From assembly GCA_977016875.1 (NCBI GenBank), contig CDRNST010000002.1, forward strand, positions 2,232,001 through 2,296,000: a DNA stretch of 64,000 nucleotides, in the 5' to 3' direction. The notes beneath the pieces were generated by a model, which searched no databases, was not told the origin of the DNA, and saw only the letters and a program-made list of their open reading frames with translations. Position 1 is the first letter of the stretch. The number at the start of each line of letters is the position of its first letter. Both the position numbers and the translations under genes were made by a program. This document shows, piece after piece, positions 58,548 through 64,000 of this stretch. The DNA comes from Pavona decussata (taxonomy: Eukaryota).

Positions 58548-59113
58548 AAATTTCCAAGTGTAGGTACAAAAAAATAAAATAACATAAAAATACATTAATT
58601 TATACCTCAAGTGAAACTTAAGTCCTTCCTGTGGTCCTACCATAGTTATCCACCATCCTGAGCTGAGCAGCCGCGTTTCTTGGAATACTGACCGGAAGTG
58701 TGTTTCCCGCTCCACTGGACCGGAAGCGGGCTTCCAAACGTCTTAGTTGCGCTGCTGGGTTTTTATTTAATTACCAACTACAAAGAATTGAGTGTTAAAT
58801 CCCTCCTTCTAGGAATTACAACCACATGATTGTGAGAGCAAAAGAAATGAAGCCTAGGCTTTCTATTATGAAAGTTGCTGTAATGACTTGGAGGTTCTTC
58901 AATCCCGAGTACATCCATACATTTATCTCGATAGCAAACCAGCCGTGAACTGCTACTAAGCCATAGTTCGTGGGAAAAAATACAGGAAAATGTATGGAAA
59001 GTTCAAAACACGTCTGGACGCCTTCTGGCACAGCTTTAATACATCCCTCCAATTTTTTTCCTTAAATCCTTTTCCTAGTACCAAAAGTTCCCATTTCATG
59101 AATATTTCAGAAG

Positions 59114-62100
59114 CAGGGCTCGAAATTGCGCCTGTATCGGGCGCATTTGCGACTAAAGATTTTGCTTTTGCGACTAAAATTTGTCCATTAGTAGCGATTT
59201 TGCAAATGTTTTACAGCCCAGCATATAAATAAATTATATTCAACAGTCTTGTGTCTTACTTGTAACTGGTAGCTGTAATTGTACCCGAAAAATTCTGCGA
59301 AATTCAAGTTAGATGTTACGTGACTTAATCGTTGATTTCTTGCTCCATTAAACGTGGTTTATCTAAGAAGTGTATCACGGGCGCACTTTTTTCAGATACT
59401 ATGTCGTGAAACGCTCATGAAATTTAGACATACTCAGAAATTTCCGTTCTCATTTCCGGTTCCGGTGGTAGAAGGTTGAGCAATATTCCCCTCTTATTTG
59501 CAATAGACCCTTATGACAATGTATGCAAATGACCAGGAGTTATCCGCTTTTAAGGCTCTTCTTATTAATGAGAATTTAGAAGAGGCAAAGAGGATGTTCA
59601 CCAGTAAGCTTGACGTATTCAGGAACCAGATTAGAACTGAAAGTGACCTTGTTCTTCAAAATCTTCCCCGCTTCGCCAAGTGTTTGATCCCAGCAGATGT
59701 CAACCAGGTCAAAGGTGAATTTTTTTCTGCACTCGAAGCCACAGCAAACGGAGACTGCTTGTTTAACTCCAGTTCAATTCTTCTGCACGGGAATGAATCT
59801 CTTGCAATATTATTGCGCCTCTTAGTTGCAGGTGAATTATATTTTAACGCGGAGTTTTATAGTGACCATGACGCTCTTAAAGAAACGAACAGAATTAGCA
59901 CGGATCTTACCTTGGGAACACTGTTTTCAATTGCTTTAACCAAAGAAGCCATGGATAAGTTTTACGAAACAGGCAGCAGGGTCGAGGCAGTGAAGGCTGA
60001 AGCGCTTGTTGCCTGTACCAGATATGGGTGGTCTTCTTTCGTACATTTTTTGGGGCTTGCCTCTGTCGTTTCAAGACCAGTACATTCAGTGTATCCTGAC
60101 GTGAATTTCCGCTATCGGATGCTCATACACAGAAGCCTATATCCAAGAACATCTCCCGCGTCTTTCCAGCCTCTGGTAGATGCAGCGCCCATGTACATCC
60201 TCTGGTCAAGAGATGGAAATTTTAACAATACCCCAAGTTCATGGTTTGAACCTAACCATTTCGTTCCTCTAATTAGCGAGAAGGAAGAGGTTACAACCTG
60301 CCCTAAAAAACAAGAAATCAAGGACTGCACTGGACAGAAAGCCAAACAACAAGCGACGCTTTCATCCTTTCTCATGGCAAAGCGCACTGGTGAAAGTCAG
60401 GCCAGTAAGTCAACTTCTATAGGAAGTCCATCTGGGCAAAAACGAACAGCTGCAGCTGCTAAACTCAGTAAAGAAGTTCAGCCAGATGCCAAGAAATCAA
60501 CTGCGCCACTCACAAAGCACATTGACAAGAGTAAGATGCTATACAAGTGGAAAGAAGAATTTCCATGGCTAACTATAAGGGATGAAGACCAAGCCCTCTT
60601 GTGCAGCCTGTATTGTAAAGCCCCAGACGTAGCAGGCAATACACAGTTTTTGACGGGCTGTTTTTCCATCAAGAAGGATTCCATGCAGAAGCACCCAAAA
60701 AGTAATGGCCACTTGCGCGCACAGACTGCTGTACTAGCTATACAGAAGCCAGTGCGCGAGACTGTTATAGCCCAGAGTCTCAGCTAAGGCAGGAAGGATG
60801 AGGAAGAAAGAGATCTGAAAGAGGTGGCAGTGAAGACGACAACAGCCTACTTCATTGCGAAGGAAGAACTTCCTTTTAGCAAGTTTCAAGGTCTTATCAA
60901 CCTACAAAAGAAAAATGGTTTAGAGATATCGTCCACTTATGCAAACGATAAATCTTGCGCTGAAATGGTTTCTGTCCTCGGAAAGGTGTTTAAAGAAAGA
61001 ACGACTGCTGAGATAAGCCAAAGTAAATAAATCAGCGTGATGGCAGATGGAGCCATGGATGCAGGCGGCCTCAAAAACGAAACTGTTTTCTGTCGATATC
61101 TTCAAGATGGCCGCCCAGTTAATCAGTTGATTGGACACAAGGCTGTCGAACATGCACATGCGGAAGGTAGGTAAAATAAATAACCAACTCAAATAGGCAT
61201 GGTGATGAATTCAGGCAGTCTGCTAGCCAAGTTTAACACTAAAGACTACAAACCAAGTATCTGGAGTTAAACATTACTCTGCAGTTTTTCTTGTATTGTT
61301 AAGTCAATACATTGGCTTTAAAAAAAGTAAAAATTTCAGTTCTTAAAAGTGTAGTTCTTAAAAGTCTGCTTTCTTCAAAATGTCAGGATGTTTAAAAAAA
61401 TTACTTAAAAAAAAACACAGAAACGTCACGGCAATTGGTGTGTTCCAGTAGGTGGTCAAATATCATGAAAAGCTCGTTTCTATTCTGTAAGGTAATCGAT
61501 AATTTTCAGTGATTTGGTCCCACAGGATTATTTAGTCATTGCAATAATTATAATATTATCGGTAAGAGTACATTAAAGTTTTCAACTTCCATCCTCTCAC
61601 ACTTACTAGAAGACGTCGGCCGTTATACACTGATGTATTAACCCGGACGGTTTGTTCTTTTCTTGTCTTTGGTGTATTAGCTAAATAATAAGCTCAGCAA
61701 GGCCTATATGTAATTTTCTGTTATTTTTAGGACTAAAGGATTCTATCTGTGCTACGTTCAAAGAAGCTGACTTGAACTGGGAGCGCAAAACTCGTTGCTT
61801 TTGGCGCGGACGGTGCATCGGTAAACCTAGGCAAGAAAGCGGGGCCTGCTGCTCTCCTGCAAAAAGAATTGCCCTTTCTTGTGGACTTCCACTGTTTGCC
61901 TCATGGGCTCGAACTCGCTCTTTTGGAACGTCAGAAAAGCTGTAAATCGGTGGATGATGTTTACAATGTGCTCAATTTAATCTGGAAAACATACCACTAC
62001 AGTGCTAAGAGTGTCTGTGCTTTAAAATCCATTGCCGATGAGCTTCAAATCAACATACTGAAGACAACGCAAGTGAGAGGCACTCGCTGGCTTCCACACG

Positions 62101-63260
62101 TTAGCCGGGCCCTTAACGTGTTTGTGGGATCTGCCAAGTCTATTTCTGTGTCTCAAGCTGGTCAGTATTCTGCCGTGTTAATGCACGTGGAAGATCTTGG
62201 CGTTAATTCAAAGGTTGCTGATATTCAGGGTCGAGCACGATATGTTGTTGAAAAAATGAAAGATGTTCATTTCGCTGCATTTTGCATATTTCTTAGCCGA
62301 TTTATTTGCTATTTTAAGTCGACTAAGTTTACAGATGCAGCGGAATGACATTCTTCTTCCGACTGTCGTATCTCATCTGAAGGAAACGAAGCTGCGCGTT
62401 GAATGCCTCACCAGTCGTCCTGTTCCAGATGTCCATTTGGAAAACTTTCTAAAGAAGGTGAACAAGAGCCGGTCATTCCAGGGTGTGGTTCTCAGAGGCA
62501 CACTTGAGGGAAAAAACTACACGTGGGGGGAGTATGACAGGCAGCCTTCAGTCTGAAATTGCCACTGCAGTCAATCTCTGCATGAAAGGCCTAAGCGAGA
62601 GGTTTGGCATTTTCTTGCAAGCAACTGAGTGTCAACGACCCATTAAAACGCCAACAACTATTTATGGCCCCAAGGAGGTTGTCAGAGATATGCTGGTCTT
62701 CAATGTGGATGTCTGGCCTACACGTAGCAGTGACCTAATGGACTATGGGGGGGAGGAGATCCAACGCCTGACCAACTAGTTCAAAGTGCCCTTAGAAAGA
62801 TCAGGCTGCGATGTCCAGAACATCCACTACCAGTGGGTTTCCCTGAAGATCTCAGTAAACAGCCAATTTCGCAAGATGGATTACGCCGCCCTTTGGGAAA
62901 CCTTGTTGACCAAATTGCCGTACAAGGAGGACTTTGCAGATGTTTTACATCTAGTGGAGATTCTTCTTGTACTGCCAATTTCGGCAGCGCAATGTGAACG
63001 AGCTGTGTCATCGCAGAATCGGATCAAATCCAGTACCCGAGCAACCCTTAACGTGGCGGTATTAGAGGACTTGATCCGTCTGTCTTCTGATGGCCCACCT
63101 GTGGCTGACTTTGTCCCAGCTCCTGCAGTTAACTGTTGGTTTGAACGGGACAAATCAAAGGGAGAACGCTCGAGGAGACCTCACTTTTCGGTGACTTAAA
63201 CTGTGAAACTGAACACAAAAATCTTGCTTTCAGGTTTACTAAAAGGCACTTTGCCAGTTT
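59114..63260 (+). mobile_element. hAT transposon; left end present, right TIR not found
   Basis: Starts CAGGGCTCGAAATT, followed by TTTGCGACTAAA subterminal repeats; transposase gene downstream. Confidence 0.75.
59513..63199 (+). pseudogene. Vertnin-like OTU domain + zinc finger + hAT (ZNF862/C17orf113-like) transposase, disrupted
   Basis: OTU ANGDCLFNS...WSS...PNHFVPL; finger WKEEFPWL..LCSLYC..H..S..H; AYFIAKEELPFSKF, MADG, GADGASVN.G, HCLPHGLEL, GTRW, LPISAAQCERAVS..NRIK. Stops at 60785, 61028 and 62777; frameshifts; intron about 61168-61730. Confidence 0.85.
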
Positions 63261-63455
63261 AGAATACGAGCAGGCTCACTTGCTTGGGATATCGCGAACG
63301 ACGCCGGCTTTACCACCTTGCAAACGCGGCATTTGCGCGCAATAGTCATACCCTAAACAAAGTTAATTTGCACTTGATTGCATTAAATGCTCGTGGCATG
63401 GTTATTATTTACATAACTATGTAATCATTTTTCAAGGATGGTGCCTACCAAACAG

Positions 63456-63645
63456 TAGACTGTTCACAGTCCCCCTATTTTTTCGTGGGATTCTCGAGAC
63501 CGGTACGCTTCTATGGAACCGCCGCCATCTTGGTTTGTAAAAGCGAGTGCGATCTGGGGAGAGTGTCTAAACTACCGAGGGGAGCGGGAGTGGGTGTTAG
63601 TAAAGTCGGTGAGGGAAAGCGAAAAAATAGAGGGACTGTAACAGC
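63456..63645. mobile_element. TE terminus/MITE with internal palindrome (AcademH-like TAG end)
   Basis: TAGACTGTTCACAGTCCCCCTATTTTTTCG versus CGAAAAAATAGAGGGACTGT.ACAG. Confidence 0.45.
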
Positions 63646-64000
63646 TTCTCACTGTCTCACATTCCAAAGGCCAGTTGCAGCAGCAACGGCAACACCTCAT
63701 TGGTCAATTAGACAATAATACTTCCGAAGCGTTGACAGCGTAACTGACGTATCTTTCACCGCCAGTTCTAAAACTGGATACGGCTGGTGTGTAATGTTGT
63801 GAAGATCATGGGGAATGTTTTGATCTTTGCTGGCTCAAAACGGTTGAAAATCAGCAGACGTGGCAGGCGGCAGACTGCAGTTTTCCGTCTCTTTGGACTG
63901 CTTTAAAGTAGATGGTGAACTGTAGGGACGACTTTCTTAACAATTCTCTGGGGCGAAACAACACACACAAAGCGATTGAAACGTTTCTGATCGTGGCTTT

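Follow-up and report, generated by a model that had tools for sequence, protein, structure and literature searches.

A dead transposon copy, very probably of the hAT5 group, with an OTU domain joined to its predicted transposase in the coral Pavona decussata

Introduction

Proteases of the ubiquitin family have been gained independently by several transposon superfamilies, with Ulp1 found in MULEs and Ginger1 and OTU in Ginger1 and Helitrons. To our knowledge, the role of these transposon-borne proteases has never been established. In Ginger1, the DDE transposase has an OTU or Ulp1 domain at its C-terminus (Bao, Kapitonov and Jurka 2010, PMC2836005), and OTU domains have also been described from Helitrons and Helentrons (HLE2) (PMC11417382; PMC2836005). 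Among the hAT transposons, the hAT5 group is known from Nematostella, Hydra and fish (Putnam 2007, as cited in PMC9004415); a TSD of 5 bp is the known exception that defines this group among hATs (PMC9004415). An OTU-like domain of papain fold is also present in vertnin, where the catalytic site is reportedly absent (PMC10318531).

OTU fusions have been published for Ginger1 and Helitrons; for hAT5 or any other hAT transposase, we found no report of an OTU domain in the literature searched, with Repbase entries lying outside that search. This agrees with a preliminary description of the locus studied here, according to which canonical hATs have no OTU. Here, we analyse a hAT element with an OTU domain that lies in a 64,000-nt stretch of contig CDRNST010000002.1 of P. 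decussata; this whole stretch is called the window in the following.

Results

Ends and class of the element

We find that the region from 59114 to beyond 64000 is very probably a dead copy of an autonomous DNA transposon of the hAT5 group, in which a single two-exon gene combines an OTU domain, a linker, a zinc finger and a hAT transposase (Table 1). The left end of the element is at 59114, where three copies share a sharp boundary and have unrelated left flanks. This end lies 399 bp upstream of the ATG at 59513, close to the ~400 bp that had been estimated earlier. The left TIR is CAGGGCTCGAAATT, and its reverse complement is located at the right ends of the copies C2, C56 and C273 and of 11 non-autonomous derivatives. 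With 14 bp, the TIR is short as in the hAT superfamily, where TIRs measure ~10–25 bp and often start with CAG or TAG.

The preliminary description had suggested a check for 8-bp TSDs. We looked for this canonical hAT duplication and found none; the TSD is 5 bp, both here (AGAAG/AGGAG) and in the derivatives. The right copy, AGGAG, lies beyond the window at ~65971–65975. More than ten paralogous copies of the host MITE represent the empty site and contain AGAAG once, which gives a TSD length of 5 bp. Furthermore, nine of the 11 non-autonomous derivatives have a perfect 5-bp TSD. We assign the element to the hAT5 group because a 14-bp TIR and a 5-bp TSD occur together with a hAT transposase; the basis of this assignment is the known hAT5 pairing of a 5-bp TSD with a hAT transposase, both of which are present here.

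A truncation of the copy on its right side at 63455 was considered and dropped: a 1233-bp MITE is nested there, which interrupts the hAT element and is not part of it. Behind the MITE, the hAT sequence continues from 64689 to its right end at window-equivalent position ~65970, outside the window. Without the nested MITE, the hAT element has a length of ~5.6 kb.

Table 1. Features of the hAT element and its gene, in positions of the window
Feature	Position	Strand	Evidence
Left copy of the 5-bp TSD, AGAAG	59109–59113	+	Empty site in paralogous host MITEs; flanks compared
Left TIR, 14 bp, CAGGGCTCGAAATT	59114–59127	+	Sharp boundary in three copies with unrelated flanks
Subterminal region and 5' untranslated leader	59128–59512	+	96–98% identity to C56 and C273; no long ORF
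Exon 1: OTU, linker, zinc finger, first part of the hAT DDE core	59513–61166	+	tblastn against intact L036 exon 1
OTU cysteine-protease domain, aa 1–258	59513–60286	+	Motifs, alignment A1, predicted fold
PIP-box-like motif Q-A-T-L-S-S-F-L in the linker, followed by basic residues	60350–60373	+	Motif counts in relatives
C17orf113-type (BED/TTF-like) zinc finger, aa 350–406	60560–60730	+	PF25431
Intron, 564 bp, GT..AG, phase 1, AT-rich	61167–61730	+	Splice sites conserved with L036
Exon 2: remainder of the DDE core, putative C-terminal hAT dimerisation region	61731–63199	+	tblastn against L036 exon 2
3' subterminal part of the hAT, ending where the nested MITE begins	63200–63455	+	Alignable to C56 and C273 until 63455
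Nested MITE, 1233 bp, long TIRs, 9-bp TSD ACYAAACAG	63456–64000, on to 64688 beyond the window	.	Absent from C56 and C273

Gene structure and decay of the window copy

The two-exon gene of the element that starts at 59114 spans 59513–63199. Its predicted product is a protein of ~1030 aa. The OTU domain comes first, and the linker behind it contains a PIP-box-like motif; the C17orf113-type zinc finger and finally the ZNF862-like hAT DDE transposase follow, the latter with a putative dimerisation region at its C-terminus. Homology searches were run exon by exon, with exon 1 and exon 2 taken separately. An ORF of 424 aa is present at 59513–60787; the second Met, at 59519, is probably the start codon, and an ATG at 59513 is missing from other copies.

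Exon 1 of the window copy aligns with exon 1 of L036, an intact element with 65% identity, over 555 aa in a single frame (69% identity, tblastn). It has two in-frame stops, a TAA at 60785–60787, which is private to the window copy, and a stop at 61028–61030, which precedes the first catalytic-Asp motif. The reading frame beyond the TAA continues with hAT sequence in the same frame, as had been described before. What did not hold is the earlier claim of a single stop, since there are also stops at 61028 and 62777. The copy further has three 1-bp frameshifts and a 564-bp intron. Exon 2 aligns with that of L036 at 73–83% identity across three shifting frames (tblastn). The damage to this exon comprises 1-bp insertions at ~61785, ~62286 and ~62511 and a stop at 62777–62779; the natural stop codon of the gene is at 63197–63199. 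The three extra bases are missing from the contigs of other runs.

The splice donor is G/GTAGGT at 61166/61167. Donor and acceptor are common to the window copy and L036, the frame is restored across the junction and the GC minimum is 0.32. None of the assembled contigs contains a splice joint; they read through the intron, which neither confirms nor refutes splicing. One true RNA-seq library contains exon pieces that are 90–95% similar, for which DNA carry-over is possible. Since its frame is broken by three stops and three frameshifts and its zinc finger is damaged, the window copy cannot make the protein, judging from its sequence. It is a fossil, and we see no consequence for the host locus.

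The hAT transposase core

Exon 2 of L036 matches ZNF862-like, DUF4371 and HAT-dimerisation proteins (E 1e-100 to 1e-121). Its relatives are ZNF862-like proteins with 40–46% identity (E ~1e-120) and the domains DUF4371, zf-C17orf113 and Dimer_Tnp_hAT. The DDE-core motifs A-D-G-x-x-D and G-A-D-G-A-S are present. The catalytic Glu of hAT transposases is part of the C-terminal dimerisation domain (Dimer_Tnp_hAT, PF05699), for which a C-E-R motif is present here. This domain scores 17.5 bits in the window, at 62891–63076, and 17.2 bits in L036, both under the cutoff of 21.4; it scores 24.9 bits in P0140 and 36.9 bits in P0352, and is found in the precomputed annotation of relatives that are 65–85% identical to L036 exon 2.

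The OTU domain

The preliminary description had named an OTU with catalytic Cys and His, followed by a linker and a Zn finger. We recover all of these: the 424-aa ORF contains the Cys motif N-G-D-C-L-F-N (Cys82, codon 59756–59758) and the His motif E-P-N-H-F-V-P (His249, codon 60257–60259), and zf-C17orf113 follows at aa 350–406. Both motifs fit the OTU pattern of [DN]-G-[DN]-C-L-[FY] with a His near the C-terminus of the domain. Among relatives, the Cys is kept in 181 of 183 and the His in 179 of 180 (~99%), together with the motif context G-x-C-L-[FY]-N and N-H-[FI]-V-P. The acidic residue two positions past the His, which is canonical in OTU, is missing (H-F-V-P). As a guess, the third residue of the triad might be the conserved upstream Asp of an I-P-x-D motif, found in 121 of 151 relatives.

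We observed a dN/dS of 0.28 for the OTU core and of 0.09 for the N-terminal part of the hAT, with the value for the OTU indicating that this part is under purifying selection. Homologues were found down to E 1e-175 in a word search, which rules out chance. The identity of the domain was established via relatives, profile and predicted fold, whereas direct searches of the window ORF were silent: PF02338 gave no match in the window ORF (E up to 1) or in L036 (E up to 10), and a PDB sequence search with the window ORF gave no OTU match. In the relatives P0061, P0066, P0192, P0237 and P0294, PF02338 scores 25–28 bits against a cutoff of 23.3. The AlphaFold2 model of the OTU has a pLDDT of 76.6 and a pTM of 0.78, and all top Foldseek/VIA matches of this model are OTU deubiquitinases (Z 11–12.6, 137–194 residues aligned). 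The predicted fold suggests the extended type that resembles A20, VCPIP and TRABID. In molluscs, the OTU clade borne by the transposon is also fused to DUF7869-type and other proteins.

Linker and zinc finger

The linker between OTU and zinc finger comprises ~90 aa and is fast-evolving (dN/dS 0.51). Its PIP-box-like motif has the form Q-G-T-L-F-S-F-[MLF] in relatives and is found ~26 aa past the His motif in 58 of 130 of them, compared to a background of 6.5%. Several distant members have the canonical Q-x-x-[IL]-x-x-F-F at this site. That the motif might bind PCNA is something we only infer. The zinc finger scores 25.5 bits with PF25431 in the window and 37.4 bits in L036, at a cutoff of 29.5; in the window copy, one Cys ligand is changed to Tyr.

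The fusion in other copies and relatives

In all three copies of the family of the window copy, the same DNA runs without interruption from the TIR via the OTU part into the core. The sister copy C56 has no stop in the 558 codons of its exon 1. In L036, one ORF of 547 aa spans OTU, zinc finger and first Asp motif. A distant family in the same genome includes at least seven copies with single ORFs of 1169 codons, where the OTU and hAT matches are in frame and 1341 nt apart, as judged from the match table only. The distant OTU-hAT relative P0352 has OTU, DUF4371 and Dimer_Tnp_hAT in a single ORF of 1046 aa; the element around it is bounded by TIRs, with CCAGT as a perfect 5-bp TSD on both sides. 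For the Acropora homologue P0021, we found no record of the encoding contig. Other relatives are OTU-less, ~780 aa long and start close to the zinc finger (P0140). The OTU part thus seems to be missing from close vertebrate ZNF862-like relatives, which suggests that it is dispensable for some lineages.

We conclude, from comparison of these sequences, that the fusion of OTU and transposase is real and conserved. A hAT lineage with a built-in OTU protease domain had been proposed before, along with a search for the fusion in other copies. The one-ORF arrangement in C56, L036, the 1169-codon copies and P0352 and the purifying selection bear out this proposal: the fusion is open in C56, intact in L036 and part of single ORFs elsewhere, and the OTU part is neither missing from the other copies nor a separately inserted fragment.

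Relation to vertnin

When PF02338 clusters are excluded, the vertnin cluster is the fourth-nearest ESM-Atlas cluster (0.83, 154 of 256 features), which the tool rates as a lead only. This cluster has HTH_Tnp_1, HTH_23 and Vertnin_mid and is without a hAT domain. No HTH_Tnp_1/HTH_23 region follows the OTU in the window ORF or in L036, where zf-C17orf113 and the hAT core are found instead. Vertnin was absent from the 67 word-search matches and from the best 150 of 3271 profile matches, and a word search with the OTU region of P0274 resulted in two proteins only, with no vertnin among them. Furthermore, the OTU family of hAT5 keeps its catalytic residues, whereas vertnin is reportedly without a catalytic site (PMC10318531). 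A link between the hAT5 OTU and vertnin is weak, with the single ESM-Atlas feature score as its basis.

Discussion

We tentatively propose an enzymatic activity for the OTU part: as an isopeptidase of the deubiquitinase type, it would be carried by the transposase to the place where the latter acts and would remove ubiquitin or a ubiquitin-like modifier there; we regard this as quite possible, if somewhat short of probable. The modifier could be stripped from the transposase itself or from host factors of chromatin, replication or repair. Its removal might then stabilise the transposase or steer the repair of the excision or insertion site. A wider scenario seems quite unlikely to us: OTU and PIP-box-like motif would together anchor a transposon-encoded deubiquitinase on PCNA where DNA is replicated or repaired, and ubiquitin would be taken off PCNA, histones or the transposase to allow hAT5 excision and gap repair; the dead OTU-like domain of vertebrate vertnin would derive from the same OTU clade.

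Viral OTU/papain-like proteases cut polyproteins, and the OTU could similarly be a protease that acts in cis, cuts the linker and releases a conventional transposase with zinc finger and hAT core. The OTU forms the very N-terminus, and the ~90 aa of the fast-evolving linker (dN/dS 0.51) lie between it and the zinc finger. This arrangement would fit self-processing, as would the OTU-less relatives of ~780 aa that begin near the zinc finger (P0140). However, the linker in alignment A1 has no conserved Gly-Gly or LRGG-like site, its sole conserved motif is PIP-box-like and unlike a cleavage site, and cellular OTUs are isopeptidases; we consider self-processing unlikely. The OTU might also be catalytically inert and serve as a module for ubiquitin binding or protein interaction, as proposed for vertnin. 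Vertnin is a reported inactive OTU homologue (PMC10318531) and a weak neighbour in feature space (0.83), and the hAT5 OTU does not have the acidic residue that usually follows the His. Yet ~99% of more than 180 relatives retain the Cys and the His, and with them the motif context on either side; this is unexpected for a dead enzyme and makes an inert domain highly doubtful.

Finally, the OTU could lie outside the transposase altogether, as a captured fragment of a host gene, a separate insertion or a chimera of gene prediction. OTUs of Helitrons are often discussed as captured (PMC11417382), and the window copy is broken between OTU part and core. However, the stop at 60785 occurs only in the window copy, all three family copies are continuous from TIR to core, the two parts are combined in one ORF in C56, in L036, in P0352 and in the family with 1169 codons, and the OTU is under purifying selection. 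That the OTU lies outside the transposase is thus extremely improbable.

Excision and integration assays are well developed for the hAT transposases Hermes, Ac and Tol2. The lineage described here is an experimentally tractable case, with an OTU inside the transposase ORF, conserved catalytic residues, purifying selection and intact multi-copy relatives. As hAT excision and integration can be assayed and the OTU lies in the same ORF, deletion of the OTU or a Cys-to-Ala exchange could reveal the role of a transposon-borne deubiquitinase.

Comparison with known systems

With the hAT5 group, the coral element has in common short CAG-type TIRs, a hAT DDE core with a putative C-terminal dimerisation region, a 5-bp TSD and a cnidarian host. 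The coral element differs in its OTU domain, which is not mentioned for hAT5 in the papers searched.

ZNF862 is a host gene and not a mobile element. The vertebrate ZNF862/C17orf113-type proteins have a homologous zinc finger (PF25431) and core, with 40–46% identity to the fish and frog ZNF862-like proteins, whereas those examined (P0140) start near the zinc finger and are without OTU. For the OTU itself, A20, Cezanne, TRABID and VCPIP1 are the best structural matches of the predicted model, including the N-terminal helical extension (Z 11–12.6, 182–194 residues); these are host signalling enzymes, with 13–17% identity to the coral OTU.

With Helitrons and Helentrons, the coral element shares an OTU that is recurrently carried by a eukaryotic DNA transposon. 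Helitrons, however, have a rolling-circle Rep/helicase, and their OTU is often incomplete and considered a capture, whereas the OTU of the coral element is conserved, has intact catalytic motifs and is located in the transposase ORF. Ginger1 likewise combines a cut-and-paste DDE transposase and an OTU in one protein, has introns in the transposase gene and occurs in cnidarians, and also in molluscs. The two differ in the transposase, whose DDE is of integrase type in Ginger1 and which is of hAT type in the coral element, in the position of the OTU (C-terminal in Ginger1, N-terminal in the coral element) and in the TSD (4 bp in Ginger1, 5 bp in the coral element).

Fusion of an OTU domain to a hAT transposase

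In the window, we found an ORF of 424 codons (59513-60787) whose product carries an OTU part and a zinc finger. With 67 homologues in a word search (best E 1.8e-175), the named ones from the corals Acropora, Oculina and Desmophyllum, this ORF is not a chance frame. An intact relative on an ENA scaffold (L036; 65-69% amino acid identity, two ORFs of 547 and 544 aa) served as guide for the exon/intron model of the window copy. All similarity searches were run exon by exon.

Four independent lines lead us to conclude that the OTU part is truly fused to the hAT transposase. The DNA is continuous from the TIR via the OTU part to the core in all three copies of the family. OTU part, zinc finger and first Asp motif lie together in exon 1 of the sister copy on contig C56, which is open for 558 codons, and also within the 547-aa ORF of L036. 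Lastly, a protein search detected a second, distant family in the same genome (36% and 33% identity), at least seven copies of which stay open for 1169-1176 codons; there, 1341 nt lead in frame from the OTU match to the zinc-finger/hAT match. The fusion proposed in the preliminary description is thus borne out, and the same ORF arrangement is found in P0352, a protein from another genome (single 1046-aa ORF; OTU 22.5 bits, DUF4371 87.5, Dimer_Tnp_hAT 36.9). The OTU part occurs in all three copies and in L036, the distant family and P0352; it is neither missing from other copies nor a separately inserted piece. The P0352 element has TIRs CA[AG]GGGCGGATCTAG and a perfect 5-bp TSD (CCAGT), and compared to L036 its OTU part is 38% identical, whereas the transposase reaches only 20-31%. 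Further proteins with OTU and DUF4371 come from Mytilus (P0222) and metagenome contigs (P0274, P0291).

Features of the OTU-hAT gene and its product, and non-autonomous derivatives in the coral genome (G000)
Feature	Location	Description
Exon 1	window 59513-61166	
Intron	window 61167-61730	GT..AG, phase 1, 564 bp, GC 0.32
Exon 2	window 61731-63199	
OTU-type Cys motif	Cys82 of ORF product	N-G-D-C-L-F-N
His motif of OTU part	His249 of ORF product	E-P-N-H-F-V-P
Linker between OTU part and zinc finger		about 90 aa
C17orf113-type zinc finger	aa 350-406 of ORF	PF25431, 25.5 bits
Non-autonomous derivatives, loci L042-L052	contigs C132, C19, C122, C78, C219, C196, C83, C318, C118	
Non-autonomous derivatives, loci L070, L071	contigs C250, C95	

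Element ends and hAT5 identity

Searching the 602-Mb source genome of the window at the DNA level, we detected two more copies, on contigs C56 and C273 (94-96% identity), and fragments on C104 and C6. The left end is sharp at window 59114 (CAGGGCTCGAAATT) and common to all three copies, with unrelated flanks; from there to the ATG it is 399 bp, matching the roughly 400 bp noted earlier. On the right, the window alignment with the sister copies ends at 63455, and C56 and C273 go on together beyond. Here the 3' region of the window copy is interrupted by a nested MITE of 1233 bp (63456-64688, across the window edge at 64000) that neither sister copy contains. Its long TIRs and 9-bp TSD (ACYAAACAG) suggest a Mutator-like element. 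The hAT tail picks up again at 64689 and runs up to the inverted TIR, which closes the element at window-equivalent 65970.

The hAT copy itself was inserted into a high-copy MITE, of which more than 10 paralogous copies have the empty site, with AGAAG once; around the window hAT, the duplicate reads AGAAG on one side and AGGAG on the other. This MITE-like host repeat, with inverted ends of about 111 bp, covers about 58800-59113 and resumes at about 65976; at least 40 copies are listed, at 87-93% identity. Among 11 short non-autonomous derivatives (0.8-1.45 kb) that share these TIRs, 9 have a perfect 5-bp TSD. Their similarity to the element spans the 14-bp TIR and roughly 70-100 bp of either end (76-86% identity).

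Neither the window pieces nor L036 reach the Dimer_Tnp_hAT cutoff of 21.4 bits; both score only about 17. L036 exon 2 has 177 relatives, among them fish, frog, crinoid and nemertean proteins named ZNF862-like (40-46% identity, E about 1e-120), which bear DUF4371, zf-C17orf113 and Dimer_Tnp_hAT. Both Asp motifs are present, as is the Glu motif C-E-R. A 5-bp TSD is known from the literature as the hallmark of hAT5, first seen in cnidarians (PMC9004415). Taken together, relatives, motifs, TIRs and TSD place the element in the 5-bp-TSD (hAT5) subgroup of hAT. Fused copies with TIRs were found, with TSDs of 5 bp instead of the 8 bp looked for.

Decay of the window copy

Measured against L036, three stops interrupt the reading frame of the window copy (60785, 61028 and 62777), three 1-bp insertions shift it (near 61785, 62286 and 62511), and one Cys of the zinc finger has become Tyr. 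The stop first described at 60785 is thus present but is not the single one. Contigs of four public runs from the same or related corals have an A at 60785, giving Lys, and lack the three extra bases of exon 2, so this stop and the insertions are private to the window copy. The ATG at 59513 is also missing from these contigs, which makes Met3 at 59519 the probable start. The window copy is dead, a fossil of an OTU-carrying hAT5 transposon.

Damage differs between the sister copies. The one at C56:6428612-6432657 is missing the stretch equivalent to window 61898-62223 (326 bp), and its tail is interrupted by 1.4 kb of inserted DNA; in the one at C273:3201041-3220030, exon 1 is broken up by two insertions, one of about 5 kb and one of about 8.6 kb. 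A 300-bp tail segment common to C2 and C56 is missing from C273.

Conservation of the OTU domain

With 25-28 bits, relatives exceed the PF02338 cutoff, and a profile of the family's OTU domain (alignment A1) detected 3271 proteins at E <= 1e-3 among 1.84 billion representatives. Among 245 retrieved domains, the catalytic Cys is kept in 181/183 and the His in 179/180, within the contexts [ND]-G-[ND]-C-L-[FY]-N and N-H-[FI]-V-P; an upstream Asp (I-P-x-D) is kept in 121 of 151 relatives. An AlphaFold2 model of the OTU part (pLDDT 76.6) matches OTU deubiquitinases only (Z: VCPIP1 12.6, TRABID 12.2, OTUD3 12.0, A20 11.5, Cezanne 11.3), and for the A20-like enzymes the match of this predicted model takes in the N-terminal helices too. 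Between C56 and L036, dN/dS is 0.28 in the OTU core, 0.24 in the finger, 0.09 in the hAT N-part and 0.51 in the linker. Given the low dN/dS, the conserved residues and the OTU fold, selection has kept the OTU domain as part of the transposase. We infer that the OTU part may be catalytically active. Such a protease might process the transposase itself; however, the linker in alignment A1 has no conserved Gly-Gly-type site, which argues weakly against self-processing.

About 26 aa past the His motif, a conserved PIP-box-like motif (window 60350-60373, aa 280-287) is followed by Lys-rich residues. Close relatives have Q-G-T-L-F-S-F-[MLF] at the equivalent position, and several distant OTU proteins the canonical Q-x-x-[IL]-x-x-F-F. 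The motif is carried by 58 of 130 proteins, against a background of 6.5%. It may be a PCNA-binding peptide.

The OTU subtype was also observed N-terminal to DUF7869 (Mytilus P0202, P0319), three times beside an LRAT/NlpC-type domain (Dreissena P0187, 1221 aa), and C-terminally with no other Pfam match in metagenome-contig proteins of 991-1520 aa (P0203, P0215, P0263).

Comparison with known systems

Vertnin is described in the literature as an OTU-like protein that is inactive (PMC10318531). Its ESM-Atlas cluster is the fourth-nearest once OTU-Pfam clusters are left out (score 0.83, a lead only). Domains of this cluster are HTH_Tnp_1, HTH_23 and Vertnin_mid, and hAT is not among them, whereas the window element has a hAT core. 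A tie of its OTU to vertnin, or to vertnin's origin, is unproven.

OTU fused to transposases has been published for Ginger1 (PMC2836005), and OTU domains occur in Helitrons (PMC11417382). For OTU in any hAT element, a literature search on hAT, OTU and transposase, with Repbase outside its scope, found no paper. The fossil OTU-carrying hAT5 copy in this coral is real, and the OTU-hAT5 architecture, which is widespread in marine invertebrates, is a variant on the known theme of protease-bearing DNA transposons.
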